DNA from: Schmidtea polychroa
Lineage: Eukaryota
Direction: 5' to 3'
Assembly: GCA_044892525.1 (NCBI GenBank)
Contig: CM097888.1
Span: 69,874,001 to 69,938,000 of the forward strand
Length of the DNA stretch: 64,000 nucleotides
The notes below the pieces were generated by a model that was given only the letters and a program-made list of their open reading frames with translations, did not search any database and was not told where the DNA came from. This document shows, piece after piece, positions 17,844 through 37,133 of this stretch. Made by a program: the position numbers and the translations under genes. Within the stretch, counting starts at the first letter, position 1. Each line of letters begins with the position of its first letter.

Positions 17844-18037
17844 CTCTAAATCATAGACATCGATTAAGCTTTTTATTATGAAAAAGGAATTTATTCATTA
17901 TTTGCTGTTTCTTTGGAAATTTTCGCATCATTTTTGGGTTTACGTATTTAGGGTTTTTCATACTATTATTATATAATATTTTATTGGTTATATACACCGA
18001 TATATACAGATTATTATATACAACATTATTCGATCGT

Positions 18038-19426
18038 TTACTCCGTTCTGCCCTTCTCCTCTTTCCTTACGGTCATCTTGATATACACCGTGCCATTTCT
18101 TGCCATATCTTCTACTTTTTGTTGTAGGATGAACGTAGGTGCTCCTGTTGCTGATCCTTCTTCTTCCGTAGGTCTCTGGTAACACATTTGGTTTCCAGTT
18201 GTCTTGAAGCTTTGTTCGTGGATGTTTCGGTCATTCATTAGTGCAATATCGATTTTCGCCTGGAACGGCCACTCTATTATTTCGTCGTATTCTCCTTTAC
18301 ATAACAGAAAGAAAATCGAAAAGTGTGTGTCTAATCCGGTTCCGTCCCCGTTGGGATATATCTTCATTTTCATTTTGTACCCATTTTTCCAAGAATGGAA
18401 TGCAGGACTTGTTATTCTTGTCTCTTCTCCGGTTTTTGCTTTTCGTATTCTTTCCTTTACTCCCGTAATCTTCCATATGTAGGGTGCTGTTGGGGTTATC
18501 TCATTTAGATTTATTTCCCGTATTTTCTGATGTAGCTCCTTGGCCTGATTATTACTGATTTCTATTCGGTTTATTTGCATCTTTATGTTTGCTCGGGCTT
18601 CTTCGAACGCTTCCCTTTCTTCTAGTAGTTCTTTGACTAACACTTTCAACGATGCTATCTCTATCTCCATTTGTTTTACTTTCTCCTCGCTTTCTTGTAA
18701 CGCAGTCGACCACATTTCTGCGTGGGTTGAAGCATTTTCTACTAAATGATGTGGTAACTCCCCTCGGTGTAGTAGTTTCTGACAACCCCATTTGCCTAGT
18801 ACGCATGTCATTCTTTTCTTTTCACATTCCCTTAGATGCTGTGCCACCTTCATTATTTCCCCTTGGTTACATCCGTTTGGGCATTCCCCACTGAACTCTG
18901 CACATACTCTCTCCTCTTGGACATTGTGATGTTTGAGGGTGAGATTTTTCCACGTATCTATTTCTCCACAGTGTTCACATCTTTCTAATCTCTCCTCACA
19001 CTGCCTTTGATGCTCTTTTTCTTCGCTTGCTCGAATGGTTTTATGGCACCTTTCACACTGGCCAATTCTGTACATACATTCTCCCATATGTTGTACTACC
19101 TTCCATATTACTCCTTTCCATTCGCATGGGGCATTTTTGCATCCCAGGTTGGTGTTTAACATGTCTTTCACTGCGGCTTTATCCTCGTTAGTGTCTTCTA
19201 AACTCGATATTAGTGTCTCTTTACACACCGGGCACCTCTGTGGTCTATTCTTTATTGCTTCACTGATACATTCTTTACATACTCTGCATCCACATTGGGT
19301 TTGGTGGGGTTCTTTTAGTAACTTTTCACAGATTCCGCACATAACATGTTTGTGTATTCTGATCGTTGTAGATTTTCGGACTTGCTCGACAATCTCTCTG
19401 AACTCTTCTCTTTGTCGTTTATCCAT
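18038..19426 (-). CDS. traf: TRAF-family protein (RING, TRAF zinc fingers, coiled coil, MATH/TRAF-C), intronless, element-borne
   Basis: RING CGICEKLLKEPHQTQCGCRVCKECI...CPVC. ZnFs CKNAPCEWKG..HMGEC. MATH YIWKI..SPAFHSWKNGYKMKMKIYPNGDGTGLDTHFSIFFLLCKGEYDEIIEWPF, which resembles TRAF2/3/5. Confidence 0.93.
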   Translation of the reverse strand: MDKRQREEFREIVEQVRKSTTIRIHKHVMCGICEKLLKEPHQTQCGCRVCKECISEAIKNRPQRCPVCKETLISSLEDTNEDKAAVKDMLNTNLGCKNAPCEWKGVIWKVVQHMGECMYRIGQCERCHKTIRASEEKEHQRQCEERLERCEHCGEIDTWKNLTLKHHNVQEERVCAEFSGECPNGCNQGEIMKVAQHLRECEKKRMTCVLGKWGCQKLLHRGELPHHLVENASTHAEMWSTALQESEEKVKQMEIEIASLKVLVKELLEEREAFEEARANIKMQINRIEISNNQAKELHQKIREINLNEITPTAPYIWKITGVKERIRKAKTGEETRITSPAFHSWKNGYKMKMKIYPNGDGTGLDTHFSIFFLLCKGEYDEIIEWPFQAKIDIALMNDRNIHEQSFKTTGNQMCYQRPTEEEGSATGAPTFILQQKVEDMARNGTVYIKMTVRKEEKGRTE

Positions 19427-19511
19427 TCTATAATTATATGTACATATAGTTCTTATCGATACAGGTTCGATATTTTATTTACAGTTATTTACATTTTAAG
19501 CTAGGTTTGGT

Positions 19512-19871
19512 TTAGGGTTCGGAAGAGTCGGCTTCGTGTCCGCTCTCCTCTCTATTCATTAACCATTCCGACCAGTCTTCTATTTCTGTCTGTTCTGCTT
19601 CCTCCATCATTCTGTTTAGTTCAATTTCCTGTCTACGGCTATATTGGGTTATCCTCTCTATCTCTCTTTGCATTTGTTCGATTTTCAACCTCTGGTCTTC
19701 AATTATCTTCAAATAACTAAATCCTCTATTCATACTCTCGATTAGGTTTCTGTGCATCGTCAATCCTTGTTCTTGCAAATTGGACACTAATTGTGCTAAT
19801 ACGGCACATTGTTGCTTCCATAATTCTTCAGTTACTGTATTGTGGTTCATTTCGTTATTTCCTTGATCCAT
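19512..19871 (-). CDS. Accessory ORF, small coiled-coil protein with acidic C-terminus (function unknown)
   Basis: Open frame; the first ATG is at 19871 (MDQGNNE...), while the track start at 19895 is TTG. Heptad-like helical composition. Confidence 0.65.
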   Translation of the reverse strand: MDQGNNEMNHNTVTEELWKQQCAVLAQLVSNLQEQGLTMHRNLIESMNRGFSYLKIIEDQRLKIEQMQREIERITQYSRRQEIELNRMMEEAEQTEIEDWSEWLMNREESGHEADSSEP

Positions 19872-20164
19872 TCTTAATTTATATACACTTTTCAACTCTT
19901 ATTTAAAGTTAATTTTATTTTATGGTTCCCGTTATTGTATAATATTAATACCGCGCTTATATAAAGATATAGTACTGTTATATACATAAGATATACTTAC
20001 TTTTTACAATTATATACAGTCATATTCCTTTCTATATACGTGAGTTTGGAGGGCGCTGAGCGTTCCAGGCCTCCACCCACTGTTCCTGTTTGATAACACT
20101 TGGTCGTTTCACTCGATGTTGGAAATTTCTGATTCGGGTCATCTCTAATTCTCCGCGATGTCGT

Positions 20165-23100
20165 TTATCTTTGATTATTTTTATTGTCGCCCCCCGTTAT
20201 GATTAGGAAGGCCCCTGTTATTATTATCCCACTGATCCACATCATCTGCTTCACGCTTATATTCTCTGGTTTCTCCTTGTTCGTTAATGTTGATATCGCT
20301 TCTATACCTTTCTCGTTTCCTCTTTTGCCATTTCCTTTCATCATTTCCCGTATTCTTGCTATTTCCTCGTTCATACCCTCCTTTGCCATCTTTTGTATTT
20401 TTTCCATCTCTTCCTCCGAAACATAGTTGTCCTGAGCTTCCTCGCCGGTTTTCTTGTGCTTTCCTCCTTCGTTCTTTTCGTCGTGGTTTTTTCTTTTCTT
20501 TCCTCTTTTCCCTGGGTATCGTCGGCATTCTCTTTTTGATTCATTCCTCCAGATACAAACCGTGTATTCTTTCGGCGGCTGCTGCTGCGTCACATATTGA
20601 TGGCATCTCTCACCTGGTCCTAATCTTGAAATACAGACTTTGTGCTCTCTTCTAGGTTGGAGCTGCGTTATTACTATTTCACCACCTTTTCCTAGGTGTA
20701 CCTCTTTTCCTTTAACGTTCGTTATTCTCTTCCCGTCTCGATTTCGGTATGCTTCTTGTATTCTTACTTCTGTTATTGGTTCTGTGTCCTCATTTATCAG
20801 TACTAGTTTCTGATACGCTCTAGACATGCATCTTCCTAGTATGCACCTTTCCTTTAAGTCCCATTCTTCCTTTAAATCCCACTGCTGCTCTTGTGCTTGC
20901 TTTTTCTTTTCTTGTTTTAGTTCATCCTCTTTGCTATCTTGATTCTCCGCTTCTTTGGTTTCTTTTATCGTTCTCGTCCCTCCATGAGCTGTTACTAACT
21001 CTATCATGGTAAGCATAATTATCATTAATATCATATTTGTCTCTATTTCTTTGTTAGTGAAAGGTAGGCATACCCTCTGTTTTCCATTATTCGGTTTTTC
21101 CTCCTCTTTGGTCTTGGTTCCCGGGCTGTTTCCCTCTCTTTTCGTATCCAAATCCTTGTTTTCCGGTTTATCCTCTTCCGGTTCTCTTTTCCCTTTATCC
21201 TCTTTTCGGCCTTTTCCGTCATTGTCATCGTGTTTATCTCCCCCGCTGTCGTTTAAAATGTCGTCCTCGACATTTATATCGTTCAATAATCTGCGATATG
21301 CTGTTAGCACTCTGTTTCTTGCTAATTTTGCTTCGAATTCAAACTCTTTTCTACCCGTTGCAGCATGTCTCTTTCTATTCCATTCTTTAACTAACTCTCT
21401 CAATTGCATACGACGATGTTTCCCAATTCGTTGTTGCTCGTTCTGATTTTGCGTGAATTTTAGGTCTTCTCTATTTAATACTATTAAAATAATTTTAGGC
21501 GTCCCCCCTTTAGTTAGGGTATTCTTTACCATCGCATTTTCTCCGTTTTCGTAGAATTCGTTTACATTTATCGCATATTTATTATTTTGTGGTACCTTCC
21601 ATGTTAATAATAATTTCATTGCTTCTAGATTTTTCCGTACCGTATTCCATTGAAATTGAGATGTGTTTTTGCACATATTCTCAACTTCTTCTTTTGTCGC
21701 ATTTTTGCAAATAAATCTGATCATTTCTAAGTTTGGCTGTATGGTTGCCCAGTCCAATGTGGAGTTCCCTTCGTTTGATTTTTCGTCTAGTCTCGATCCT
21801 GATTGATGTAAGATGTGGAGTGTTTTTGGGTGTATTTTCGTTATAGCTGCATACATCATGGCGGTTTCACCTTGTTCATTTTTCGTGTTGGTTTCCTCAC
21901 CCATCTCCCCAAGGATTCTCATGATCGTTATTGCTCTATTCTCTTTTGCAGCTAGTATTGCTTGTTGTAGAGGTGTTCTGGAATCCTTTGTTACCATCGT
22001 AAATGCTCGAGGCAAGAAGGTTTTGATTTTCCCGATATCTAAACCCGTGGTTTGATCTCTTGCGTATGTGTGTACGGCTTTTATTATTTTGGACAATATT
22101 ATTTCGTCTGGCAGCTCTAGCATTTCCTCAAAGAACACTTCTTTTGCTTTGCGTATTATTGCCTCTTGATCTATACTCATTGATTTGGTTTCGATGACGT
22201 TGTTTGTGACCGTTTGGTTCGTTGTTGACTTTGATTCCCTTGATTTCTCATACCTTATTTTCGTTTTCTTTCCGTTTGGATTATTGATTCGTTCCTCTGC
22301 TGTAAGTATTTGGATAATATCCAGGTAATTCTCGCGGATGTTATTCATTGTGTCCATCATATATAACACACTTACCGTTTCCCAATATTTATTTCGTACT
22401 TGGTTAGTAAATTGGAATATTGATTTTTCGAATGTGTCGATTCGCTTTTTTGCTAACTGTTCATCTTTATGATTTGTGAATTTTATCCCTCGTTCTAGTA
22501 ATTGATTCGGAATTTCGAATAAATGATGTCCTTTCATAGCTTCTCTCATCAGCGTGTTCTCTCCTCTCGTGAACGCTTCGTTTACGTTGATCATATAATC
22601 GTTTTGAATTGGATTTCTCCATGTAATTAATATTCCGGTAATTGTTGTCAGTTTCTCTTTGATCGCTGTTAATAATCCATCATACATGTTTCCGACTTCT
22701 CGATTGTCCTCATATGATAGTAGTTCCATCAACGACGTGAACGCCTCGGTACTTTTCCCTTCGATAGCATGATGTAGAGCGTTTTTCCGCTCGTGGTCTT
22801 GTGTAGTTATTTTCGATCCAGTATCGAGTAATGCGGTTATAATGTCTTTTGTTTTGCCTCTGTTTGCGGCTATCATTAATGGTGTGTAACCTTGGTTGTT
22901 TGTTTGTTCTGTTGATCGCTTGCAGTCGTGAAATGCTTCTATTGTTTCTAGTATTTGCTCGTTGTTACCTACTTTCATGAGTTTGTGTAATGGTGTGTCT
23001 CCGTAATGATCTGTTATTGTAAATAATATTGGCCATTGGCTTTTGACTACTCGCAATAATGGGTGTGTCCTTTCTCTATTTGCATAGTTCTCGATCATCG

Positions 23101-26100
23101 TCAATAATCCTCCTAATATTTCGAAATCTAATCGATCTTTTGCCCATCCAGGTATTTTAATTTTTACCTCTTTTACAATCTTTTCCGCTTCTGATGGTTG
23201 GATACCCAATCGTCCGGTGATCGGTTCTGCGAGTTGTTGCATCATGTTCATTCTGTAGGTTTGCGAACGTGTGGTTAATGTACGGCCCTCTGGTTGACTA
23301 GTGGCTGTTTTTGGAATTGATTTGCATCGTGCTACGTTTACGTATATTGGCCTGGTAAATGGGTTATTTACCAATTTCACTCTTACATTGGTTTCGCCTA
23401 CGAATAAGATCTCATATGGTCCTTTTCCGTTGCGTTGTAACTTTTTTGTGGTTCCTGGAATTAATTCCGGGGTTTCTATCATTACCCAATCACCTGTTTG
23501 AAACGTATGTTGCTTCACGTTTTTCTTTCGATCGTGTAAATCTTTATAACTTTCCTGGTAGAACTTGATATTTAATCCCGCAGTTTCCCAAATCTCCTGC
23601 ATTCTTTCCTTGAATTTCGTAACATAATCGTCGATCTCCATATACTGCGATATCGGTGGTTGGTATTCCAGGTCCATTGGCATATTACATTCTCTTCCGT
23701 ACATTAATTTGAATGGGCTCATTTTCGTTGATGCGTGAATCGACATTCTGTACGCCATAAGACATAGGTTTATATATTCGTCCCAATCTCGTTGGTGACG
23801 GTCAACGTAGTTTGATAACATTTGTATAAGTGTTCCATTAAATCTTTCCGTCATCCCATTGGTTTGGGGGTGGTATGGAGATGTTCTTAGTTTTGCTATT
23901 TTGAAGTAATTTGTTACTTCGCTCATTATCTCACTCATAAAATTAGTTCCCTGATCGGTTAATATCTGTTTTGGTGTTCCATATCGGCAACATATCTCTT
24001 CTACCAGAATTTTTGCGATTGTTTTAGCTTTTTGGTCTGGCATCGCGAATGCTTCTGGAAATTTCGTAAGAAAGTCGGTAATCACTAAAATATAAACGTT
24101 TCCTCTATCCGATTCCGGTAATGGACCAACTACGTCCATTGATATCATCGTCATCGGCTCTATTGGTACGGGCATTGGCGTTAAAGGCGCTTTCCATTTT
24201 GATCCAGTATTTTTCCTGGTCGCACAAGTTAGGCAATTTTTTACCCATTCGGTTACATCTTCAGTTAACGTAGGCCAAAAATATTTCTGTTTCATTCTTG
24301 CTAACGTCTTTTTCGATGACATATGTCCTCCCAATCTCCCATCGTGATATTGCGTTAGTAACTCTTTTCGTCGGTTTTCCGGTATACACATTAATCGTTT
24401 TTCCCCATCCATTATCAGCAACCAATCTTTCTCTATAATATATCGGTGTCGGTGTTTATCCATATGTTCTTTTAATTTTTGGTCTTTCGCATATACATCT
24501 GTCTTTCCGGTTTTTACATAATCGATAATTTGTTTTAATTCCGCGTCCTCTTGTTGGTTCTTTCGCAATTGACAGAAATCTAGGTCTTCTGCTACCATTA
24601 GGCATATGCGTTGCATTTCTGAATCCACCAAATCTGGAAAAATAAATCTTGACATACAATCGGCGTTGGCATTTGCTCTTCCCGCTTTGAATTTTATAAA
24701 TGGGGAGTATTCTTGCAATTGCATGGCCCATCTCATCAGTCTACTGGACGCTTCTTTATGTTGCCCTAACCACACTAATGGTTGATGATCTGTGGTTATA
24801 CATATCTCATGTCCCCATAGTAAATATCGGAAGTGTTTGATAGCTTGTATTATAGCCAATGCTTCTCGTTCTGTTACCGAATAGTTCTTTTCGTGCTTTT
24901 TGAATGTTCGACTGTAATACCCGATTACTCTCTCTTTTCCTTCATCGTCTAATTGTCCCAGAATCGCGCCTGCCGCGTACCCGCTTGCATCCGTTGCCAA
25001 TAGAAATGGCTTCTTAAAATCTGGGTGTACTAGGATAGGTGCTTCGATTAGTTTATCTCTCAGCGTTTCAAACGCCTCTTGTTGTTCCTTCCCCCAAATG
25101 AACGAAATGTCCTTCTTTACTAATTCCTGGATTGGTTTTGCAATTTCTGCATAATTTTTTATAAATTTGCGATAGTATCCGCATAATCCTAGAAATTCCT
25201 GAACTTGGGTGACAGTTTTCGGTGCTGGACATGTTTTTATTTTCTCAATGTTTCTTGGATCTGGCTCCTTTCCTTTAGCTGACACTATGTGTCCTAAAAA
25301 CGTGACTTTTTCCTTTGCCCAATCGCATTTTGATGGTTTGAGTTTGAGTTTCCACTGTCTTAATCTAATAAATACGTTTCGGATATCTTCCAGATGTTGT
25401 TCAAATGTCGCTGAATAGATTAGTAAATCATCAATATATACCATACATTGTTTGATTCCATGAGTGACAAAGTTCATACACCGTTGAAATGATGCTGGTG
25501 CGTTGGTCAGTCCGAATAGCATTTTCCTGAATTGATATAGATCTCGTCCCAACGTGAAAGCTGTTTTCTCTTTGTCCTCATCTTTGACTTTAATCTGCCA
25601 GTATCCACTTTTTAGATCTAAAGAAGTAAAATATGCTGCCCCTTGCAACATCAATAACATCTCATTGATGTCCGGCAATGGATAGGTATCTCTCTTGGTT
25701 ACTGCGTTTAACTTCCGATAATCGATACAGAATCGTTGGGTGCCATCTTTCTTTTTTACCATGACCACTGGGAATTGCCAGGGTGAGCAACTTGGTTCGA
25801 TTACTTTTGCGTCTAGCATCTTTTGTACTTCTGCTTCGGCTATTTCTTTTTGCATTTCTGCTAGCTTGTATGGTCTTAATGCAATTGGAGTTTCATCTAT
25901 GAGGGGTATTGCATGTAGGGTAACATCGCATGTACCCAAATCTAAATCTGAGATGGCGAATATATCTTTATATTCTACCAACAATCGGTGCAATTTTTTC
26001 TTTTCATCATTCGTCAACAACATACTATCTATTGTCCATAATTCATCATCTTTGATCATCTCGTTGGTCACTTTCGGTAATTCTATGTCCATCATTGGGG

Positions 26101-28870
26101 TCAATCTTCCCAATTTTTCGTTCTCATAAATGATTTTGTCTTCCTCTTCGAAATTCGTGATGTTGAGCGGTATCACTCCTTCTTGGTTTATTGTGATTAT
26201 TTCCCTTTCGAGTGGTAACTCTCGTCGCTTTTCAAATGACTTGCTTGGTTCAAAGATAACTTCTCCTTCCATACCCGTATCCACTTTTATCTGACAAATC
26301 ATCTGCGATTTTGCTGGTACTATTATTTTTTCTGGACATCTGATTACTGCATTCATTTTGCATATTCTACCGGTTTTGTCTTTTAAACACATGGTGGTTA
26401 AGTCAATTACGACTTCTTTTAACAATTCTGGCATCAAATCCGTTCCGATTATGCATGGTACGCTAAGTTTTGGTATTACTGCCAAATACGTTTCAATTTC
26501 GTTGTCCTGGTATCTCAAAGTAGTCCACCATCTTCCGACCACGTCCACTGTTTCTTTACTACATGCTATGATGTGAATTGTTGTTGATTCGATATCTTTC
26601 CAGTGTTTACTGGGGATTTGATTAATCGCTATCGCTGATACATTAGCTCCGGTGTCTATCATAGCATTGGTTTCTTTACCATTGATTTGAATCATAACTG
26701 TTACTGCTGGACCTCCAGGTAGACTCATTGCTGCTATTGTTCTTACGTCATCTGCTTGATCTACACTTTTGGTACGTCGTGTTGGCATATAATGCATACC
26801 GGGTTGACTCGGTAATTGCGGATACATATTTTGTGTCATGGTCAAAGCTGCTTGTGGTCCCACGATATCCGGTGGTATGTAGCTTCCATTGGCGATCCAG
26901 GTATTTGTCTTTTCCTTTTCCCAATATGGTGCCGTTTCCATTGGTTTTTCGTTTGGGTTTCTGTTTGGATATAGACATTTATCGTTCCCGTTATCGTCGT
27001 CGTCACTATCGCTGTTAGATGATTGGCTTCTAAATCGGTTCAAGAATTTTGGCTTATTCTTTTTCAATTGTCGTCTTGTTGCTTCATCGTACATTACTTT
27101 CCGGAATCGTCTGCCTACTTCTTCGTCGGTTCCTTTAATCTTTGTTAATATTTTAATCAATTGCTTTATCCGATGAATGTCTTTTGAGTGACCATGTAAT
27201 ACCATGGTTTTAGCTAAAAATGGTAGAAAGCCTACTATCATTTTCCAATTTACTTTCTTTTCTCGCTTGTATATATCAAAACACGCTAACATTTGTGTTA
27301 GTTTTACTCTGACTATCTGAATTATGAGTATGATCCCTAATATCCCGGCCATCATTTGTCCAAAAACTAAGAATCTTCCCCACATTGCTTTCATCATGTT
27401 CGATGTGGCTTGTTGAAAATGGTCTGGTGATAGTAGCAGCTCGTAATTCGGGCCTGATTGATAATTTGTTCCCCCCGTTATTGTAACCATATTTGACAAA
27501 ATGGATTCTCGTCTGGCTGGGAAGAGTACGTTAAGTCGTGCTGTTTCTAGATCTTCTGGGGAATACATACCACCGTTTGACACGTCTATAGGTTTGAAAT
27601 CCAGCTCTGTGGCGAGTTCTATTAATCCAAATTTCTTGGGCTCCTCGGATATGGTTTTTCCCGGTAACATCATCCATTTCCCATCGGGTCTTTCATACAA
27701 AGGTCCGTATGCATTAGAACAGTTAAAGAGATTTGGGTAGAAACCCACTGGATTCATAATTCTAGTGACTGGTAGGACGAATCGATTTTGTCCTTTATAA
27801 CGGATTTCTAATTCATTTGCACATCTCTTTTCGGGTAGTATGGATTTTTCTGGCATTCGTGCATACGTCTTGGTACACTGGTATGTGTACATCACTTCTC
27901 CTACCATTCTACCAAAATGTCCATCTGGTAATGGGAGTGATGGCATTGTGTTATCTGGGTGTGTTATCGCAATAGCTAACTTGGTTTTCAGTATTTCTTT
28001 ATTCAATGAACAATCGTTTTGTATCAGATCGTAATATACTTTTTGCAAGGTCGTTTGTCCACGGTGAAATAGAAAATCCATTTTATTATTTGCATATAAG
28101 TATAGTTTTACGTCCTCCGTTGCTATCTTTCCCACTGCTCTATCGATTATTTGTCTCGACATATAGATACCAGCGTAATTGGTTTTATATACTATACTGT
28201 CACATTTGGTGGTTTCTTTCTCTTTGATAAATCTCATACCTAGATCTGGATCGTCTGTGATTAATGCTGTTGGTGTCTTCTGCGTTGAAAGTCTCTTTTC
28301 TCTGGGAGATGGTGGCATTGGTTTTCCATTTCGCATTCTCACCCTGTCGTTTCCATCCTCGTCGTTCTCGTTCTCATATATTTCTCCTTTTACTTCATTG
28401 AACAAAGCACTTTTTAACAGTTGGAGTCGGCATTTTTGGGTATTAGCTTCATAGATTATAGTTGATACTCCTGTCCTGCATACGTTTTCTGTAGCTCTAC
28501 ACGCTGGGTTGGTCTTCATTTGATAATTATTTGCGTCAAATTGCGCTTCGTATTCTTTTAATTCGACCGTGTAAGACTCGATCACTACTACTCCCGATAT
28601 TACCTCACCTCGGATCGTATACGTACCTCCGTTACATGACCCATCTGATGATTTTAGTTTTCCGGATACGTAAACGCTTTCGGTTTTAATCATTCCAGTT
28701 TGTCCGTGAATCGTCACTCCGTTATGCATTTTTAGCGCTCCGGTTCTAAATAGCTCTTTACAGTCCTCTCGTTGTATGGATACGATTTCTTTATCCAGAC
28801 CAGGTAGTATAAGAGTCGAATACGAATATTGTCCACAGTAATATGGAGTACCTTTTTTGATACCACGCAT
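20165..28870 (-). CDS. pol: Env-Pol polyprotein (2,901 aa ORF): chuvirus/gB-like glycoprotein + TM, aspartic protease, RT, RNase H, integrase, ankyrin repeats, C-terminal membrane module
   Basis: Env motifs YYCG, GSCNGG, GEVMYTYQC, RCANEL, FVLPVTRI and a TM at ~27305-27375. PR IDTGA (26648-26656). RT PYK/SPW/DYRKLN/LDLKSGYWQ/FGLTNAP/YIDD (25427-25438). RH TDAS..EREALA..TDH. IN HHCC, MDVVGP, TDQG, ERFN, GPY. ANK motifs GDTPLH, GYTPLMIAA, KNALHHA, GETAMMYAA. Confidence 0.93.
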   Translation of the reverse strand: MRGIKKGTPYYCGQYSYSTLILPGLDKEIVSIQREDCKELFRTGALKMHNGVTIHGQTGMIKTESVYVSGKLKSSDGSCNGGTYTIRGEVISGVVVIESYTVELKEYEAQFDANNYQMKTNPACRATENVCRTGVSTIIYEANTQKCRLQLLKSALFNEVKGEIYENENDEDGNDRVRMRNGKPMPPSPREKRLSTQKTPTALITDDPDLGMRFIKEKETTKCDSIVYKTNYAGIYMSRQIIDRAVGKIATEDVKLYLYANNKMDFLFHRGQTTLQKVYYDLIQNDCSLNKEILKTKLAIAITHPDNTMPSLPLPDGHFGRMVGEVMYTYQCTKTYARMPEKSILPEKRCANELEIRYKGQNRFVLPVTRIMNPVGFYPNLFNCSNAYGPLYERPDGKWMMLPGKTISEEPKKFGLIELATELDFKPIDVSNGGMYSPEDLETARLNVLFPARRESILSNMVTITGGTNYQSGPNYELLLSPDHFQQATSNMMKAMWGRFLVFGQMMAGILGIILIIQIVRVKLTQMLACFDIYKREKKVNWKMIVGFLPFLAKTMVLHGHSKDIHRIKQLIKILTKIKGTDEEVGRRFRKVMYDEATRRQLKKNKPKFLNRFRSQSSNSDSDDDDNGNDKCLYPNRNPNEKPMETAPYWEKEKTNTWIANGSYIPPDIVGPQAALTMTQNMYPQLPSQPGMHYMPTRRTKSVDQADDVRTIAAMSLPGGPAVTVMIQINGKETNAMIDTGANVSAIAINQIPSKHWKDIESTTIHIIACSKETVDVVGRWWTTLRYQDNEIETYLAVIPKLSVPCIIGTDLMPELLKEVVIDLTTMCLKDKTGRICKMNAVIRCPEKIIVPAKSQMICQIKVDTGMEGEVIFEPSKSFEKRRELPLEREIITINQEGVIPLNITNFEEEDKIIYENEKLGRLTPMMDIELPKVTNEMIKDDELWTIDSMLLTNDEKKKLHRLLVEYKDIFAISDLDLGTCDVTLHAIPLIDETPIALRPYKLAEMQKEIAEAEVQKMLDAKVIEPSCSPWQFPVVMVKKKDGTQRFCIDYRKLNAVTKRDTYPLPDINEMLLMLQGAAYFTSLDLKSGYWQIKVKDEDKEKTAFTLGRDLYQFRKMLFGLTNAPASFQRCMNFVTHGIKQCMVYIDDLLIYSATFEQHLEDIRNVFIRLRQWKLKLKPSKCDWAKEKVTFLGHIVSAKGKEPDPRNIEKIKTCPAPKTVTQVQEFLGLCGYYRKFIKNYAEIAKPIQELVKKDISFIWGKEQQEAFETLRDKLIEAPILVHPDFKKPFLLATDASGYAAGAILGQLDDEGKERVIGYYSRTFKKHEKNYSVTEREALAIIQAIKHFRYLLWGHEICITTDHQPLVWLGQHKEASSRLMRWAMQLQEYSPFIKFKAGRANANADCMSRFIFPDLVDSEMQRICLMVAEDLDFCQLRKNQQEDAELKQIIDYVKTGKTDVYAKDQKLKEHMDKHRHRYIIEKDWLLIMDGEKRLMCIPENRRKELLTQYHDGRLGGHMSSKKTLARMKQKYFWPTLTEDVTEWVKNCLTCATRKNTGSKWKAPLTPMPVPIEPMTMISMDVVGPLPESDRGNVYILVITDFLTKFPEAFAMPDQKAKTIAKILVEEICCRYGTPKQILTDQGTNFMSEIMSEVTNYFKIAKLRTSPYHPQTNGMTERFNGTLIQMLSNYVDRHQRDWDEYINLCLMAYRMSIHASTKMSPFKLMYGRECNMPMDLEYQPPISQYMEIDDYVTKFKERMQEIWETAGLNIKFYQESYKDLHDRKKNVKQHTFQTGDWVMIETPELIPGTTKKLQRNGKGPYEILFVGETNVRVKLVNNPFTRPIYVNVARCKSIPKTATSQPEGRTLTTRSQTYRMNMMQQLAEPITGRLGIQPSEAEKIVKEVKIKIPGWAKDRLDFEILGGLLTMIENYANRERTHPLLRVVKSQWPILFTITDHYGDTPLHKLMKVGNNEQILETIEAFHDCKRSTEQTNNQGYTPLMIAANRGKTKDIITALLDTGSKITTQDHERKNALHHAIEGKSTEAFTSLMELLSYEDNREVGNMYDGLLTAIKEKLTTITGILITWRNPIQNDYMINVNEAFTRGENTLMREAMKGHHLFEIPNQLLERGIKFTNHKDEQLAKKRIDTFEKSIFQFTNQVRNKYWETVSVLYMMDTMNNIRENYLDIIQILTAEERINNPNGKKTKIRYEKSRESKSTTNQTVTNNVIETKSMSIDQEAIIRKAKEVFFEEMLELPDEIILSKIIKAVHTYARDQTTGLDIGKIKTFLPRAFTMVTKDSRTPLQQAILAAKENRAITIMRILGEMGEETNTKNEQGETAMMYAAITKIHPKTLHILHQSGSRLDEKSNEGNSTLDWATIQPNLEMIRFICKNATKEEVENMCKNTSQFQWNTVRKNLEAMKLLLTWKVPQNNKYAINVNEFYENGENAMVKNTLTKGGTPKIILIVLNREDLKFTQNQNEQQRIGKHRRMQLRELVKEWNRKRHAATGRKEFEFEAKLARNRVLTAYRRLLNDINVEDDILNDSGGDKHDDNDGKGRKEDKGKREPEEDKPENKDLDTKREGNSPGTKTKEEEKPNNGKQRVCLPFTNKEIETNMILMIIMLTMIELVTAHGGTRTIKETKEAENQDSKEDELKQEKKKQAQEQQWDLKEEWDLKERCILGRCMSRAYQKLVLINEDTEPITEVRIQEAYRNRDGKRITNVKGKEVHLGKGGEIVITQLQPRREHKVCISRLGPGERCHQYVTQQQPPKEYTVCIWRNESKRECRRYPGKRGKKRKNHDEKNEGGKHKKTGEEAQDNYVSEEEMEKIQKMAKEGMNEEIARIREMMKGNGKRGNEKGIEAISTLTNKEKPENISVKQMMWISGIIITGAFLIITGGDNKNNQR

Positions 28871-29175
28871 TCCCTTGCTTGCGTTCTGATGAAATCTGAT
28901 TCTTGATATACATGGTAAGTAACTTTTGTTCTTACTATGTCTAATTTGTTGGGTGATGCTTGTCTACATTCTTCTATGTCTCTCAATGAGTATTTATCTC
29001 TCATTATCATATTATCACAATCGTAGATGGTAAAACCCGTTGCTCCACTGGTGCACAACATCCATATCATCATAGTCATCATTAACGAATTTATTGATGC
29101 TTTTCGGCTTGTTGGGTCTTTCATGGGTAGTTCCCATTCTAGTTCATTTAGCAACTTCTTCAATCTAACTTGCAT
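28732..29175 (-). CDS. env: N-terminus of the envelope glycoprotein (signal peptide plus start of ectodomain); joins the large ORF by a -1 shift near 28852-28858
   Basis: Hydrophobic leader SLMMTMMIWMLCTSGATG, then FTIYDC...IEEC...HVYQ...ECVVSKK. This continues as (G)TPYYCGQYS in the -1 frame, as expected for chuvirus-type G N-termini. Confidence 0.78.
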   Translation of the reverse strand: MQVRLKKLLNELEWELPMKDPTSRKASINSLMMTMMIWMLCTSGATGFTIYDCDNMIMRDKYSLRDIEECRQASPNKLDIVRTKVTYHVYQESDFIRTQARECVVSKKVLHITVDNIRIRLLYYLVWIKKSYPYNERTVKSYLEPER

Positions 29176-32100
29176 CGACCTTTCTTGCTCATTTTTTCGT
29201 GGTGCTTGTATAAGTCTTTTCCACGAATAATATGTGGTTCAATAGTATTCTCTATGATTGAAACGGTCATTTCCACATGATTTGCAAACTGTTTATTTGG
29301 TATTTTCCTCGCAGCTAGTCCCATCAAATTAAACATCAAATACGTGATTACCACTAGGTGATGTTCGTCATCATTTGCATTCGTCGTGAGCTGTTCAATC
29401 ACTCTCTTTGTTTCATCCCAGTCCGTTTTGGTGGTTTTCGTTTTCTCTTTGATTAACTTTGGAATTATCCCCGAAACGATGTGCCATAATTGTCTAGCTT
29501 CCGTACTGGCTACTTTCCGTTGCCACAAACGTCTAAGTTGTGGGTTTGTTATTATTAACATATCTTTTAACAATTCTCGTATCCATTTTTCTCCTCTTTC
29601 GATCGTTGGTTGGGCTTCCTTTAGATCCCATACTATTTTATCCAATTTTTCTAATCGAACTTGCCCTTGTTCTTGCTTTAATTGTTCTTTGGTTTTAAAC
29701 TCAGACTTTTCTCCTTGTTTCTTAGGTCTTCCTTTTGCCCGTTTTTCCATCATCGTTCCGGCTTCTCTGGTATTTTCGTAATTCGGATTTCTTTCGTTAT
29801 CCGTCCTGGGTAATGAGCTATCGTTATTTCTTAGCCACTCATTCCATTCGTCTATTATTTTATCGGTTTGACCTTCTGGTGTTACTTTCGTTGGTTCTCT
29901 TTGCTTCTGGAATTGTTCATCCGTTTCGGTTTCCGTAGTATTGTCGATGATTTCTTTGATGTTCAGTTTCGTTGGTTGTTGATAACTCGTTGATGGCTGG
30001 TTATTAGTCCACATTTCGGCTCCTGTCGGCCATCTCACTAATAGCGGTGATCTTTCTCCTGGTTCATCGTCACTATCTTCCAGGATTATCTCTTCAACTT
30101 CTTCAGTTTCATTAGATTTACTTGGTGCTTTGTTCGGACTTGGAGTACTCAAACTGCCTTTTGTTGGTTTAGTAATTTTACTTTTCCTTTTTAACGGTTT
30201 CCCCAACGTTTCTGCCATTGTTAATACATTTGTCTCTTCCAATCTCATGGGTGTTATTCCGACGTCTGCATTATCGTCTAGTGATTTTCCGAACAGTTGC
30301 AGATGGAATGGAGTTTCATATGCTAATTTCTTTTTTAATTCTCTAATCTTTGTTGTTGGATGCACCTCTAGTTCCTCGATGCTCTTGTCCGGATACTTGA
30401 TTCGGATGTGATACCTCTCCTGAGTGTCTTGTGCCCATTCCTGATTTCTCCATTTTCGAATAATTTGTTCTAGCTGTTCTGGATACCATTCATTATATTG
30501 CCGGTATTCCTCTATTGCCTTTGCCATTCCTCTCAGATTGTGGATGTTTTCTGATGTTTTTAAGATGATGTTAGCCAACGCTACTACTTGGCGTTTTTGA
30601 TTTTTCGCTCCCATTGCTAAGATATCGCCTAATTGTTTATATCTTTCTTTCTCTTCTCGTTCTCTTGCTTCTATTGCTTCCTCGCCGTCCATATCAGCAT
30701 ATTCTCGTTCCTTTTTCCTCATTGCATGAATATGTCTCGCTTCATTTTCGCTTTCTGATGTGACATCCGTCTCGCTTTCGTCATCCGATGTCTGTTCCCT
30801 TTCTTCTTCTTCATATTCTGGAGGTTCCTCTTCTTCTTCCTCCGATTCACTTTCTGTCTCACCAATGTCTGTTTCTACGAAGATTCCTTTCCGGATTTCC
30901 CATTCCTTAGTTTCTGCATTCCACATTCTTTCCCATGGGGTTCGTCTGCAGGATCTGGTACTTAGTTTCGTGATTTTTCCTTGTAGTTCCTTTTCTTTTA
31001 ACCATTGTTGGTGGATTTTAATTATTTCCGTAGATTTTTGATATAACGTTTTCATCCGGTCTCGTATTTCTTTTTGATAGGTTACATCTCTTGTTCGAAA
31101 TTCATCCATTGGTACTATCCTGATTATCTGATGATTGTCCCACATACCCATTTCGCTTAACGAGGTGTCGTCCTCCGCTCGTAATATTATTTTATCGTAC
31201 ATCATGACTACATCATCCACCATACCATCACTACTTTCGCTACGTAACTTTTCCGTTATCTCTTGGTTTATTTTTGATACCAAGTCATCTACTGTACTCT
31301 GATTGCTCATTTTTATTCGTCGTTTTTCTTCGTTCGGTAACCATATGGTTATTTCCAACCTCTGTGGCTGGGTTTCTTTTAACCTTCCATATTTGTGGAT
31401 TAAATTTATGGTTCTCCAATCACTCATCCGGAGCATTTCTGTATCTCGCAATCGGCTCATTAGTTCGTACATGGCTGGGGCTCGTCTGGTGATGAGTAAA
31501 TCCCAGTTGTCTTCCACTTGTGCTTGAATTTGTTTGATCAGCTTATCCAGGTTTCGTCTCAGAGTACATTGTTTTATTTGTTCTAATTTCAATTTGATGT
31601 TAAAATCATATTCTGCCTTGGCATCTTTAGCCCAATCGTACAGGTTGGCTGGTTGTTTTTCTTTATGCAACTTCAGTATTTGCGTTTCTCCTGGCCATAT
31701 TAGTGCATCTACTAAGTGCATATCTGGTTTGATCTGTTCTCCTTGGTATTGATACAGATATTCTTTCTTTCTCGAACTTCCCAAATGTTCTCGTATCCAA
31801 TCGAAAAGTTCGTCGGTGACTGTATTTTTTATCCACATTCTTTCAAGTCCTCTGCTCGTTCCGATTTTTATGACATACCGCGTGGTATCTGCCTGCTTCA
31901 TTTTTTCCATATACTTTTTTATAATTGATTTTTCCTCGTTTGGTATTAAATCTTTCTCGTTTCTTTCCAATTTCATCACTTTTTGCACGAATCGCCTGAA
32001 TGGTATTACGTCGATGAACTCTTGGTTCCTCACTACTACTGGGAGTATTTCAGCTACTTGTTTTATCGCTTCCTCCCTCTCTTTTCTCAACTTTATTTCG

Positions 32101-33875
32101 ATATCTTCGTCTTCACTTTCACTGGTTATCTCGCTTTCGCTTTCTTCCTCTTTGATTTCCCCTTTTGGAGGTTCGCTTATTTCATTCAGCTGTAGTATTT
32201 CTCCACCCAAACTACTTACATAGTCTTCTTCTTCGTCTGACGATGCTACATCTTTTGTCCTTTTCATCATATTGATTTGCAAGTTTCTCATCCTTGGTAC
32301 TCTCTTTAGTTTCTTTCTTTCGAATATTGTTGTTTCTTCTGATTCCAATTCTTGTAGCATTTGGTGGTTTAGTTGACTGGTTTGTTCCTTGCTCTTGTTA
32401 TTTTCATCTTCTGTCTCGGCTTTCGCTTTATTATGTTCTTTTTCGATTTTATCTTTTATCTTTTTCCAGAATATTTTCTGAATTCTCTGGTTTCCTTTTA
32501 AAATCGTGGTTGAATTCTCTGTTTTCATTTCCGTTGTTGTTTCTGTTACCTTTTCTGGTTCAGTCATGGGTGCTACCCTTGGGTTTTTCCCGCAATTGTA
32601 GCAATACTGGCTTTTCATGTCTTTTACTAACTTCATCATATTAATTCGCAATGGTTGTTCTTGTCGTTGTTGGTTGCGTTCTTGTTTTATCCTCTCTTCC
32701 TCGGCCTGTAGTCTTTGCCATTCTTGTACATGTTGATGCACTTCATAATTGTTGAGATTTTCGGTACTCCTCATCATACGTATGTTCTGGGTTTGTTGTG
32801 GTGCTGGTTCTTGTCTTGGTCTCATCATTTGTTGCATCATCTGTTTCATCTGCGAGATTTCCTGCATAACGTTCATTTGTTTTCCTTCGCTAGGGTTACT
32901 TTGTCGTTGCGGATTCGCCATATAATTATTATTTCGCTGTGGTGGTCGTTGTTGTTGGCCCCTTTCTCGGCAATCTCTGGAGATGTGACCTGGCTGACCA
33001 CAGTTAAAACAACCTCTCAATTGGCATACATTTTCGGTATGTCCACGCCGTCCGCAACGATTACAATTTGAATTTCTATAACAATCTCTGTCCCAGTGTC
33101 CTGGTTTACCGCATGTTCGGCACTGCTTGTTATCGTTCATATTTCGTCGATTACTAAAATTGTTCTCATTATTCAGGTTGTTACGATTACCATTATTCCC
33201 ATTTGATCGTCCTTGTGGTGGTTTGAAAATTTGGTGCGCTCCTGGTATAAATTGATTCATTTTCGGTTCTTGATTGTTGTTATCTCCGTTATCCGCTTTC
33301 GCTATTGCTGTCGCTATCCTCCCATCTTCTTGCATAATATTCATTTGGGCTGGAAGGTGGAGCTCGCATCTTGTAGCCCAATCTATGGCTTCCTCTAATG
33401 TTTTGCACATTTGACAACCTACTGAGGCTCTTACTTCTTCTCGGCGTAATCCCTCTATGAAATAACCGATCAGATTTTCTTCGGGTAATTTTCCATTCAT
33501 TGCTTTCTTCGCTAATCTCCGCAATTCACTGGCATATAATGTTATCGATTCGTTCGCTCTTTGTTTCCTATTTGCTAGTTCGCCCAACGCCTGGTTGATT
33601 GGCTTACTGGCTCCGAAGGTTTTCTTCAGGAATGTTTTGATATCTTCCCACTTTTCTAATTTCGTATCTCTCTCTTTAGCTTCTAAATATACTTCTAATG
33701 CGCTATCGCACAAAAACAACGGCATCCTTTTACTAATTGCTTCGGGTGTCCATCCACACACCGTGATATAAACTTCAAAATTAGTTATGAACGTTGCTAG
33801 CTTGTTTGCATTTCCGTTGAACGGTTCTCCTCTGAACTTCTCTTTATACTCGTCGGTTTTTACGATATTCGTCAT
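29160..33875 (-). CDS. gag: Extended Gag polyprotein (1,571 aa): capsid, 3 CCHC zinc knuckles, long extension with 3 ubiquitin-like domains
   Basis: Ty3-type capsid motifs (FNGNANKLATFITNFE; KQRANESITLYASELRRLA; FIEGL). Knuckles CRTCGKPGHWDRDC, CNRCGRRGHTENVC and CFNCGQPGHISRDC. Confidence 0.92.
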   Translation of the reverse strand: MTNIVKTDEYKEKFRGEPFNGNANKLATFITNFEVYITVCGWTPEAISKRMPLFLCDSALEVYLEAKERDTKLEKWEDIKTFLKKTFGASKPINQALGELANRKQRANESITLYASELRRLAKKAMNGKLPEENLIGYFIEGLRREEVRASVGCQMCKTLEEAIDWATRCELHLPAQMNIMQEDGRIATAIAKADNGDNNNQEPKMNQFIPGAHQIFKPPQGRSNGNNGNRNNLNNENNFSNRRNMNDNKQCRTCGKPGHWDRDCYRNSNCNRCGRRGHTENVCQLRGCFNCGQPGHISRDCRERGQQQRPPQRNNNYMANPQRQSNPSEGKQMNVMQEISQMKQMMQQMMRPRQEPAPQQTQNIRMMRSTENLNNYEVHQHVQEWQRLQAEEERIKQERNQQRQEQPLRINMMKLVKDMKSQYCYNCGKNPRVAPMTEPEKVTETTTEMKTENSTTILKGNQRIQKIFWKKIKDKIEKEHNKAKAETEDENNKSKEQTSQLNHQMLQELESEETTIFERKKLKRVPRMRNLQINMMKRTKDVASSDEEEDYVSSLGGEILQLNEISEPPKGEIKEEESESEITSESEDEDIEIKLRKEREEAIKQVAEILPVVVRNQEFIDVIPFRRFVQKVMKLERNEKDLIPNEEKSIIKKYMEKMKQADTTRYVIKIGTSRGLERMWIKNTVTDELFDWIREHLGSSRKKEYLYQYQGEQIKPDMHLVDALIWPGETQILKLHKEKQPANLYDWAKDAKAEYDFNIKLKLEQIKQCTLRRNLDKLIKQIQAQVEDNWDLLITRRAPAMYELMSRLRDTEMLRMSDWRTINLIHKYGRLKETQPQRLEITIWLPNEEKRRIKMSNQSTVDDLVSKINQEITEKLRSESSDGMVDDVVMMYDKIILRAEDDTSLSEMGMWDNHQIIRIVPMDEFRTRDVTYQKEIRDRMKTLYQKSTEIIKIHQQWLKEKELQGKITKLSTRSCRRTPWERMWNAETKEWEIRKGIFVETDIGETESESEEEEEEPPEYEEEEREQTSDDESETDVTSESENEARHIHAMRKKEREYADMDGEEAIEAREREEKERYKQLGDILAMGAKNQKRQVVALANIILKTSENIHNLRGMAKAIEEYRQYNEWYPEQLEQIIRKWRNQEWAQDTQERYHIRIKYPDKSIEELEVHPTTKIRELKKKLAYETPFHLQLFGKSLDDNADVGITPMRLEETNVLTMAETLGKPLKRKSKITKPTKGSLSTPSPNKAPSKSNETEEVEEIILEDSDDEPGERSPLLVRWPTGAEMWTNNQPSTSYQQPTKLNIKEIIDNTTETETDEQFQKQREPTKVTPEGQTDKIIDEWNEWLRNNDSSLPRTDNERNPNYENTREAGTMMEKRAKGRPKKQGEKSEFKTKEQLKQEQGQVRLEKLDKIVWDLKEAQPTIERGEKWIRELLKDMLIITNPQLRRLWQRKVASTEARQLWHIVSGIIPKLIKEKTKTTKTDWDETKRVIEQLTTNANDDEHHLVVITYLMFNLMGLAARKIPNKQFANHVEMTVSIIENTIEPHIIRGKDLYKHHEKMSKKGRCKLD

Positions 33876-35239
33876 GATTGGTGTTCTAGATTCGTCTGTT
33901 TCTTTTAAATTGTCTAACGATGTGACTAAACTTTGGGCTGATAATTCCTCGGTTGACGTTGCTAAACTATTAGTGATGTCGGACAGACTTTCTCTGCTTC
34001 GAGATCGACTAGGGGTGTATCCGAGATTTTCTTGATCAAATATAGGTACTTGATTGGTTCTTCTTGATCCTTGTGATATTCCTCTTTGCTGTTTAATAGA
34101 TCGTCCTCTTTTGAGTTGTTGTAATTCGTCTCCTGAAAATAATACGTCTCCTGGCTTACTTGAAGATCTAAGATTGGGTTTATCCGTGATTCCTTTCTTA
34201 CGCTTCTTGGTAATTAGCGGCTATTGAATTGGACGAGTTCGGTTCTGATTGTGTTTCCTTCGATAAATATTCTGTATGAATCTGCTACTGTGATTCTGAG
34301 GAGATTCACTAGTCCTTGACAGATGGCTGCTAATATTATGAGGTTGAATATATCGATGATTCGTTCGAAGTTGGAGATGTCGCTATCTGTATCTTCTTCC
34401 GTTCTGGAGTCTTCCGGTTGCTGTGTCTCTCGGTGCGGGTTCTGAATGGATTTATTCTTGGTCGATTGTCGATTTCTTCGAATTCCTTTTGTGCAGGTTC
34501 TGGATTGTCTTGGTTGACTGGATTGGTTTGATATCTAAAATTAAAAAATGATCTCGTGTTGCATTTGCTTACACGACTTCATCATTCTTTCAACAACGTT
34601 CGAACACAGACACCTTTTAGGTTCTGTTTATGCTTCCCCTATTGTTTATGCAATTACTTCCGCGGGTTATAATTTCCCATCAGCCCGAATTTTTCGTCGA
34701 TTTTAAATTATCTATATGGGGTAGTAACAATTATCTATAAAGTCGTAATAATTATCTATTCGTTATCAATTATAGTAAAAATAGGTCGTTGTCGGTCTCT
34801 GCTTATTACTCCCCTTCGTTTTCCTATTCCTTTTGCGCTGTTGTCGCTATTTTACTTTTCATATTTACTATTATTACACTCGGTTCGACTCTGGGACCAA
34901 TAAAATGCATTTTCCCGGTTTAACCAAAAAAAATATTCCGTAGAGTTTCTCTACTTCACTGGGATCCCTTTAATTAGTTGGTTACTTTCCTCTTTACTCA
35001 TTATCATCGTTTCGCCTATTCTTTATTTTCCATTATCTCTTTAATTCGGTTCCTTCTTCCCTTTCCTTTTTCATTATAATCTTATTATCTTTTCCACGAG
35101 CTCGTTTATTTCCTCTCTAAACTCAAATTTTCGTAATTACATTCAATTTGTTTCTAGCTGGCTTTAATATTCCCTTTCTCTATTAATTCAGATATTAGCT
35201 CATTGTAGCTTAACTGCTATCTCTCGCTTTTCTAGGCCT

Positions 35240-35764
35240 TTACGACTGGCTGGCACTATTCAACAGCTCAATCTTCTTCCTCCTGACCGGTTGGACTATT
35301 CGACAACTCGATCTTACGACTGGCTGGCACTATTCAACAGCTCAATCTTCCTCCTTCTGATCGGTTGGACTATTCGACAACTCGATCTTACGACTGGCTG
35401 GCACTATTCCACAGCTCAATCTTCCTCCTTCTGATCGGTTGGACTATTCGACAACTCGATCTTACGACTGGCTGGCACTATTCAACAGCTCAATCTTCCT
35501 CCTTCTGATCGGTTGGACTATTCGACAACTCGATCTTACGACTGGCTGGCACTATTCCACAGCTCAATCTTCCTCCTTCTGATCGGTTGGACTATTCGAC
35601 AACTCGATCTTACGACTGGCTGGCACTATTCAACAGCTCAATCTTCCTCCTTCTGATCGGTTGGACTATTCGACAACTCGATCTTACTATCTCCGAACTG
35701 GCTGGACTTTTCACAGCTCAGTTTTCGTTTTCCTTGACCGGCTGGACTATTTACAGCTCGGCTT
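35240..35764. repeat. 74-bp tandem repeat in the element leader (6 full units plus 1 degenerate)
   Basis: Copy of 8956-9480. Confidence 0.92.
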
Positions 35765-36324
35765 TAACATTCTTTACTCTGCATGCTTCTACTTCTCTCT
35801 TTCTTCTTTTACTCAAGATTACCATTTTCTCTGTCTATTTTTAATTTGTTGACTTAATCTTTACCGCTCGGAAGTGTGTCCCCTTTCCCCCCTTGCTCAA
35901 AACGCACGACGATCGCGATGATCCATTTCTACATTGGCATGGTGATCAGTCATGCCGTAGAAACTTCTCATCATTTGCGATGGTACCCCGCCCTACGCTC
36001 CTCACTTAGGTTGATCGGTTATCCCCTCCCAATTGGTTTTATCGTATGATAGAACGTACCGCCCTAAGGTGGCTCGGTTTGTACCCTTACAGCCTATATT
36101 GGGACTAATTCCACGTTATTTCGGTTTTCTTTTCGTTTGATTCCAAAACAAAGTTATAAAATAAAATTAAAAGCCATAAATTACTCAGTTCACAACAAAA
36201 ATTTATTCGTCATAGAAATAAAAATTAAAACTTTAATAAAATTTCACACAACAATTACATTTATTCTCATTCAATCGTCAGTATCAATTTGATGTTCATA
36301 GATGTTATTGTATCTGTAACAGTT

Positions 36325-36810
36325 TTATTCACCATAGTAAACCATATGAGTTTCTTTTATCTCATGCCTACATATCGTACATCGTTTTAAATCGTTCACA
36401 CATTCTTCGCAGTGACTGAGGTGTCCACACGGCAAAAACAGTACGCGAATAGGACGAAGTTTACAAGCGCGACAAGTTCGTAGTAGAGTCAGTTTTTCTT
36501 GTATTTTCCGCTCGATTGTATCTGATATGGTATTTAGTGGATCTTTTATACGTTGATAATCAAGATTTAATGCTGGGTGGTTCAATCTCTCTTGATACCA
36601 TTGATACACGGTTTCCGGGTTTACCTTCCCATCTGGGTGACTTAGTCCTGTGGCTAATAACATGTGGTTGGGGACGACTGGTGTTTGCCCGATTGCTTGA
36701 AGTAGTATGATGTTAATTCTTTCTCTTTTTTGTGTCAGCGTTTTAAGGGAGTCATTCTCGATGTTTATGAAGTTGATTAGTTGTTGTATCTGGTCTACGA
36801 ATTCCGTCAT
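36325..36810 (-). CDS. Leader ORF with C-terminal IAP/Mdm2-type C3HC4 RING
   Basis: CRACKLRPIRVLFLPCGHLSHCEECVNDLKRCTICRHEIKETHMVY at the extreme C-terminus. Located between the PBS and gag. Confidence 0.85.
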   Translation of the reverse strand: MTEFVDQIQQLINFINIENDSLKTLTQKRERINIILLQAIGQTPVVPNHMLLATGLSHPDGKVNPETVYQWYQERLNHPALNLDYQRIKDPLNTISDTIERKIQEKLTLLRTCRACKLRPIRVLFLPCGHLSHCEECVNDLKRCTICRHEIKETHMVYYGE

Positions 36811-37108
36811 GTCTATAAAAAAAATGTTTCAGTAATATATGACTTCGTTTCGTCAAACATTCTCTTTTCTAACTCGTTATCATTATTTTACTTTTATCTT
36901 ATTTCTCTATCATTAAATTTGCTTTATTTATATTTTTAATTTTATTATTTTCTATTCGTGATTATAATAAGATTCGATAAGCATTAGTCAATTTGCTCTC
37001 GCTAACCCATTGAAATCACTAACCCCGGTGAGTTCACTCTATTCGACAGAAATTCACTCAATAACATCCCTATCCAGTTTACACTAATCAATGGAAATTT
37101 CAATCTAG

Positions 37109-37126
37109 ATCCCGGCTGAGCCCCCA
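37109..37126 (-). promoter_or_regulatory. Primer-binding site, tRNA-Pro type
   Basis: Minus strand TGGGGGCTCAGCCGGGAT matches the canonical tRNA-Pro PBS TGGGGGCTCGTCCGGGAT at 16/18 positions. It lies 7 nt after the LTR terminal CA. Confidence 0.88.
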
Positions 37127-37133
37127 AAAATTA

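Follow-up and report, generated by a model that had tools for sequence, protein, structure and literature searches.

An envelope glycoprotein of predicted chuvirus type encoded in frame ahead of the protease in a giant Ty3/gypsy element of Schmidtea polychroa

We analysed a stretch of 64,000 nucleotides from Schmidtea polychroa (assembly GCA_044892525.1, contig CM097888.1, positions 69,874,001 to 69,938,000 of the forward strand; hereafter the window, with positions counted from its first letter). A retroelement on its minus strand encodes a viral-type envelope glycoprotein (Env) upstream of, and in one open reading frame (ORF) with, the protease (PR), reverse transcriptase (RT), RNase H (RH) and integrase (IN) of a Ty3/gypsy-type Pol, as had been proposed in an earlier note made from the letters of this DNA alone. 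We read the region as the gag/env-pro-pol core of a giant Ty3/gypsy endogenous retrovirus of the Burro kind, present as a tandem array in AT-rich animal DNA, and put the probability of this reading at about 0.8. The layout is real, conserved and unusual, but it has been in the literature since 2019: the novelty that the earlier note saw in it does not hold, as an in-frame env between gag and pol had already been described for Burro (PMC6431247).

The long minus-strand ORF (28870-20165) comprises 2901 codons without a stop from the ectodomain through the ankyrin repeats, an open length for which the base composition of the strand gives a chance probability of about 1e-91. Pfam analysis revealed, in this order, the Monjiviricetes fusion glycoprotein family PF24664 (193.5 bits against a cut-off of 27), RVP, RVT_1, RNase H, the zinc-binding and core domains of integrase, and ankyrin repeats (Table 1). 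The catalytic motifs DTG, YIDD and HHCC are all intact. The transmembrane (TM) segment is the strongest hydrophobic stretch, and AlphaFold2 models a long helix there; both this segment, as placed by hydropathy, and the protease DTG lie exactly where the earlier note had located them, and the tail of about 200 amino acids (aa) that it described between TM and protease was recovered as well. The tail is net basic, with 35 K+R against 22 D+E. It also holds one motif of the YPxL type, a pattern known as a budding (late) domain, although a four-residue pattern easily arises by chance.

The stretch from RT to IN gave the Ty3 Gag-Pol polyprotein (7q5b) as its best solved-structure match, with an E-value of 8e-117 across the whole stretch. 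The adjoining gag product matched PF03732 (E 8.9e-10) and PF00098 (E 8.2e-10) and carries three C-x2-C-x4-H-x4-C motifs; a ubiquitin-like match in the same protein was weak (E 0.76). With the order PR-RT-RNase H-IN, a capsid-like domain and CCHC knuckles, the element belongs to Ty3/gypsy (Metaviridae) by both its Pol and its Gag.

The ectodomain is predicted to be a chuvirus-type class III (gB-like) fusogen, and the suggestion made to this effect from the motifs alone was borne out by the PF24664 match and by structural modelling. Residues 1-560 of the long ORF were modelled with AlphaFold2 using 110 homologues as input, which gave a mean predicted local distance difference test score (pLDDT) of 85.9 and showed beta-rich domains, a central helix of 48 residues, and membrane-proximal and TM helices. 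When the model was compared with predicted viral structures using Foldseek, glycoproteins of chu-like viruses were the best matches (E 5e-30 and weaker, with probability 1.0), followed by those of qin-, xinmo-, nyami- and rhabdo-like viruses and then by herpesvirus gB; in the PDB, every top match was herpesvirus gB (E 7e-8, probability 1.0). TM-scores were low (0.25-0.45), as expected for multi-domain proteins in differing conformations.

The env part was then searched exhaustively and without profiles, yielding 778 homologues at E<=1e-3. The top matches were long proteins in which env is embedded, and stand-alone viral glycoproteins of 650 aa ranked later, at 20-28% identity. The relatives are mostly metagenomic, with clusters drawn from ENA, JGI, Logan and NCBI. 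The earlier note had suggested looking for the same order elsewhere, and at least 29 protein clusters, at 30-52% identity, have env upstream of PR/RT/IN in one ORF. By local domain mapping, 23 cluster representatives have an ORF in which PR and/or RT-RH-IN come after env; in seven of the 23 (P0018, P0178, P0181, P0183, P0188, P0198 and P0214) gag, env and pol share a single ORF, and env is always uninterrupted. Precomputed Pfam assignments added six further relatives with PF24664 plus RT and integrase families. At the level of contigs, L002 carries gag followed by an env-pol ORF of 4844 aa, and the same layout was present in L005 (a single ORF of 3700 aa) and L006 (3419 aa). The nearest pol sequences, at 49-52% identity, all come from the env-carrying group. 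A scan of metagenomes for additional loci returned only two, and none were found in the IMG/VR scan.

More than 20 relatives, with identities of 30-52%, retain a frame that is open from env through integrase and 2100-4800 codons long. The hydrophobic segment directly before the ectodomain, with equivalents in eight long relatives, and the TM segment after it also recur, and the distance from TM to the first protease in relatives is 100-200 aa. Since the arrangement is kept in many independent relatives, the env-pol fusion is not a chance read-through but a family trait under selection. Some relatives have gag in frame as well, which shows that gag, env and pol in one frame are among the natural states of this family.

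Other features of the relatives were also recorded. In P0003, P0005, P0199 and L001:9624-16787 the number of protease-like domains is two or three, with one located behind the integrase, and an ORF for an RNase_T-family exonuclease lies downstream of pol in L002 and L003. P0009 (NCBI HBK71150.1), an env-PR-RT-RH-IN protein of 2627 aa, is listed as hypothetical and assigned to a metagenome-assembled genome of Flavobacteriaceae; its source is almost certainly a eukaryotic contig that was wrongly binned.

The copy in the window departs from its relatives at the start of env. The signal peptide is encoded, together with the beginning of the ectodomain, by an overlapping ORF of 147 aa (29175-28732) that is offset by -1 from the long ORF. 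Comparison with relatives shows the two ORFs to be consecutive pieces of one env, which is unbroken in every relative examined. The earlier note had described a signal-peptide-led ectodomain running without a stop into Pol; the continuity of ectodomain, TM, tail and Pol stands, but the signal peptide and the start of the ectodomain (29034) lie in the other frame. As the sequence stands, env therefore has one frame change, and translation from the first ATG in the long ORF would give a product that lacks the signal peptide. The signal-peptide-like segment aligns with the hydrophobic segment ahead of the ectodomain in relative P0001. Neither copy in the window has a complete, uninterrupted env coding sequence with signal peptide, and both are identical in ORF 29175-28732 and share the same env state.

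A second offset lies at the gag/env junction. The gag ORF occupies the third frame, again offset by -1, and the frame of the env start overlaps the end of gag by 78 nucleotides; the analogous overlap in L002 is 40 nucleotides, in the -1 frame. Neither in the window nor in L002 does the gag/env overlap contain an in-phase canonical slippery heptamer (X_XXY_YYZ), and the overlap inside env contains one among 76 positions, where about 0.5 are expected (background 22 in 2900 and 9 in 1570). With heptamers absent or near chance, neither frame change can be called programmed, and no relative has a frame change within env; programmed -1 frameshifting was accordingly left without support. Both frame changes are of the single-nucleotide kind and occur in low-complexity sequence, the setting in which length errors of long-read assemblies are most frequent. 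They reflect either a slightly damaged copy, or single-base length errors of the assembly, or a use in expression. The change within env is private to this locus, all relatives having an unbroken env. The gag of the full copy has no breaks, and that of the partial copy (7591-2876) has one premature stop.

Damage of this kind, one frame change in env and one premature stop in the second gag, would fit an accidental continuity, in which nested insertion or decay happened to leave a chuvirus-derived endogenous viral element in frame within a dead gypsy element. We regard this as very improbable. The order and frame recur in the clusters described above, 2901 codons remain open, the three catalytic motifs are intact, and no more than 7 substitutions in 14,959 bases separate one copy from the other; identities of 30-52% exclude that the relatives are copies of one recent element. 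Conservation across relatives led us to reject this explanation.

Burro (GYPSM1) comprises giant gypsy-like long terminal repeat (LTR) retrotransposons of planarians, whose internal region can reach 25 kb (Arkhipova and Yushenova 2019, PMC6431247). Their ORF1 polyproteins measure 4,873 aa (Burro1) and 5,140 aa, their Gag has three or two CCHC knuckles (three in S. mediterranea), and their env region matches mononegavirus fusion glycoproteins and lies in frame between gag and PR; the motifs reported include MATH_TRAF_C, BIR, BCL2-like, SUMO-like, ankyrin, RING and Smc, together with dUTPase and tandem repeats (PMC6431247). The A/T content of Schmidtea genomes exceeds 70%, and Burro elements are abundant in them (PMC11410931). 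Compared by description, the element in the window shares with Burro its giant size, three knuckles (as in the S. mediterranea Burro), an in-frame env before PR, PR-RT-RH-IN, ankyrin repeats, MATH/TRAF and RING domains, Smc-like coiled coils, tandem repeats and a host of more than 70% A+T. As in Burro, env is in frame with PR-RT-RH-IN; gag adjoins it, here in another frame.

Several points weigh against this assignment. The env of this copy is not in one frame, owing to the change described above, and where Burro1 has a single ORF1 of 4,873 aa, gag, the env start and env-pol here occupy three frames. The MATH/TRAF domain is encoded here by a separate ORF downstream of pol. This matches neither position described for Burro, where the domain is part of ORF1 in S. 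mediterranea and of an upstream ORF in D. tigrina (PMC6431247). BIR, BCL2-like and dUTPase motifs were not found in the window proteins by Pfam search, permissive thresholds included, and for the Ubi2/SUMO-like motif there was just the weak ubiquitin-like match noted above. Translation as one polyprotein, cleavage by signal peptidase and the membrane tether considered below are all deduced from sequence. Finally, kinship with Burro is drawn from described features rather than from direct sequence comparison, and the probability given at the outset applies to the reading as a whole. Grohme et al. 2018 is also said to be a source for Burro (GYPSM1).

The order gag-env-pol has likewise been described in 'ancient errantiviruses' of Nematoda, Bryozoa and Platyhelminthes (Chary and Hayashi, eLife 2026, PMC13524379), where Sacco et al. 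2022 (J Gen Virol 103:1739), on nematode NERVs, is cited for that order. These errantiviruses and NERVs resemble the present element in their Ty3/gypsy pol, their gB-like/chuvirus-like class III env and the position of env before pol. The NERVs of Sacco et al. reportedly have a continuous gag-env-pro-pol ORF. By contrast, the eLife survey handles the genes as three ORFs and does not discuss in-frame fusion, and giant elements may fall outside its net because the sizes of the regions searched were limited (PMC13524379). Capture of a chuvirus glycoprotein has also been reported for the mosquito BEL/Pao element 'Anakin' (Dezordi et al. 2020, PMC7642597). Anakin is alike in that an LTR retroelement captured a Jingchuvirales-type glycoprotein, and unlike in its superfamily, BEL/Pao. 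The env of the Anakin elements is not known to be embedded in a polyprotein.

As for the origin of the fused product, an ancestor captured a gene for a class III fusion glycoprotein of chuvirus-like type, which came to sit in the polyprotein frame between gag and protease. A possible mode of action can be proposed. The hydrophobic segment before the ectodomain, internal in relatives with in-frame gag, would act as the signal sequence; judged by eye, a small-residue pattern suited to signal peptidase follows the first hydrophobic segment. The ectodomain would enter the lumen of the endoplasmic reticulum and the TM segment would stop transfer, so that everything behind it, from the tail through protease, RT, RNase H and integrase to the ankyrin part, would remain cytosolic. 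Gag would be split from Env-Pol by signal peptidase, after which the protease of the element would release Pol from the Env tail. A Pol tethered to the membrane as the tail of Env and packaged through Env, as the earlier note envisaged, is plausible and consistent with the predicted topology. That the tether is what brings Pol into particles is a tentative idea, which we hold to be somewhat doubtful. The full scheme, in which Gag-Env-Pol is one membrane-inserted polyprotein and Pol is carried into budding particles by Env, not by Gag, and freed there by the protease, appears unlikely.

To our knowledge, no described reverse-transcribing virus has been shown to use an assembly route with Pol on the Env tail, and our literature search found no discussion of the membrane-tether idea. 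Functional analogies are available. In polyproteins of the flavivirus type, a cytosolic capsid, an internal signal sequence and then a membrane glycoprotein follow one another in one product; foamy viruses package Pol without a Gag-Pol fusion, and their budding depends on Env. The likeness is functional only, with no homology, and we know of no system of either type in which the polymerase forms the cytoplasmic tail of a fusion protein.

Two other accounts of expression and packaging have to be weighed, both of which we consider improbable. Env and Pol may be made separately, from spliced or subgenomic messages or by reinitiation, as retroviral env is, with Pol packaged by another route. The separate gag and env-pol ORFs of the window and L002, with their short -1 overlaps and no canonical heptamer, speak for such expression, as do the ATG that ORF 29175-28732 has of its own about 27 residues ahead of the hydrophobic segment and the ORF ends between protease and RT in P0001/L001, P0002 and P0005. 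The frames of 2100-4800 codons kept in more than 20 relatives are nevertheless hard to explain if read-through had no role, and no pol-specific start or splice signal was identified in the window. Alternatively, the polyprotein may be made and the tether be irrelevant, the protease freeing Pol to the cytosol and Pol joining capsids via Gag or genomic RNA, in the way that foamy viruses package Pol. In the window as in relatives, the protease immediately follows the tail, which together with the two or three protease-like domains of several relatives suggests extensive self-processing, but the same features fit the tether model equally.

The element forms about 1.6 head-to-tail tandem units on the minus strand. 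Positions 26285-41243 are 99.95% identical to positions 1-14959 of the window (7 substitutions in 14,959 bases), with six substitutions in gag and one in env; six of the seven thus fall in gag, although gag makes up less than one third of the compared length. The tandem arrangement could have arisen by unequal recombination between LTRs, or by collapse or expansion of the assembly. On the minus strand, TGTTGGG opens both units, at 41243, adjoining AT-rich host DNA, and at 14959. A check for LTRs found TG at the unit starts; with the copies in tandem and one of them cut by the window's edge, the sequence does not define the inner LTR end, the primer-binding site or the target-site duplication. 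The terminal inverted match is just a 6-mer, at about chance level, and no tRNA genes were found within the window.

The GC content is 38-40% within the element vs 22-29% outside, and the host flank, at more than 70% A+T, matches the figure reported for Schmidtea (PMC11410931). About 12 kb from the element lie exons of a LIM-domain-binding (LDB/Chip) gene, which together with the low GC of the flank identify the host as an animal whose genome is very AT-rich. Elsewhere in the flank, a patch of somewhat higher GC contains an ORF of 371 aa with no Pfam match (61952-63067, minus strand), which could be another mobile element or a run of host exons.

Several additional ORFs surround the core. A small IAP-type RING ORF similar to the one upstream of gag is also found at the 3' end of relative L002 (L002:22895-23398), and no BIR domain was detected; the two placements would fit a site inside a long LTR. 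The TRAF-like protein is complete, and its sole homologue found was the unnamed P0271 (37% identity). Two proteins of the window, looked up by exact sequence, matched no record. The long ORF itself extends about 900 residues past the integrase; this extension holds a pair of ankyrin blocks and a charged region, and close to its C-terminus lie two hydrophobic segments. A strongly hydrophobic segment is likewise present near the C-terminus of relatives P0009, P0152 and P0016.

Table 1. Features of the element and its surroundings in the window; residue numbers refer to the long ORF (28870-20165).
Feature	Position	Strand	Basis or remarks
Element, one full period, 26,284 bp	14960..41243	-	Giant Ty3/gypsy-type, tandem arrangement
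Element copy 2, partial	1..14959	-	Repeat start, upstream ORFs, gag and beginning of env-pol; runs past the window's left edge
Region upstream of gag	35092..38450	-	Two ORFs and a tandem-repeat array
ORF, 249 aa	38450-37701	-	Upstream of gag
ORF, 161 aa	36810-36325	-	IAP-type C-terminal RING; zf-C3HC4_3 E 8e-12
74-bp tandem repeats, about ten units	35835-35092, again 8808-9551		Between upstream ORFs and gag
gag ORF, 1571 aa	29160..33875	-	Retrotrans_gag, three CCHC zinc knuckles, long poorly conserved C-terminal extension
env-pol gene, first to last base	20165..29175	-	ORFs 29175-28732 and 28870-20165; one frame change within env, otherwise open
Signal-peptide-like hydrophobic segment	29035..29094	-	Hydropathy; about 27 residues after the ORF's ATG
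Env ectodomain, predicted class III, chuvirus-like	27368..29034	-	Pfam, AlphaFold2, Foldseek
Monjiviricetes fusion glycoprotein PF24664	aa 196-535 (best stretch)		Pfam E 5.8e-57
Transmembrane anchor	27311..27367	-	aa 502-520; Kyte-Doolittle mean 2.27 over 19 residues
Tail from TM to protease, about 204 aa	26699..27310	-	Predicted cytoplasmic
Retroviral-type aspartic protease	26423..26698	-	Pfam RVP E 6.7e-10; DTG 26656-26648
RT (YIDD), RNase H, integrase (HHCC and core), Ty3/gypsy type	23816..25759	-	Pfam, structure match
RVP protease; RVT_1; RNase H; integrase; ankyrin	aa 725-816; 1038-1196; 1259-1388; 1496-1685; 1970-2386		Pfam
Post-integrase extension of the long ORF	20165..22963	-	Ankyrin 22963-21713 (Ank_2 E 5e-17); hydrophobic 21034-20978 and 20254-20189
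Accessory ORFs downstream of pol	15193..19895	-	Include ORFs of 127 aa and 219 aa
TRAF-like ORF	19426-18038	-	RING E 1e-4; TRAF-type zinc-finger region; TRAF-mep_MATH E 1.8e-25
Two coiled-coil proteins	17843-16788 and 16658-15894	-	Downstream of pol
Host exons of LIM-domain-binding (LDB/Chip) gene	53573-55548	-	LIM_bind and LID domains; part N-masked

The dozens of metagenomic relatives suggest that such a design occurs more widely than the few published cases would indicate. This is useful for annotation, one relative (P0009) being filed under a Flavobacteriaceae genome bin. The layout poses the question of how the element produces Gag, Env and Pol in workable amounts, and of how Pol enters particles without a Gag-Pol fusion. 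For the biology of these elements, the layout shows that an RNA-virus fusogen, once captured, can be maintained within the polyprotein of a retroelement over long evolutionary periods.

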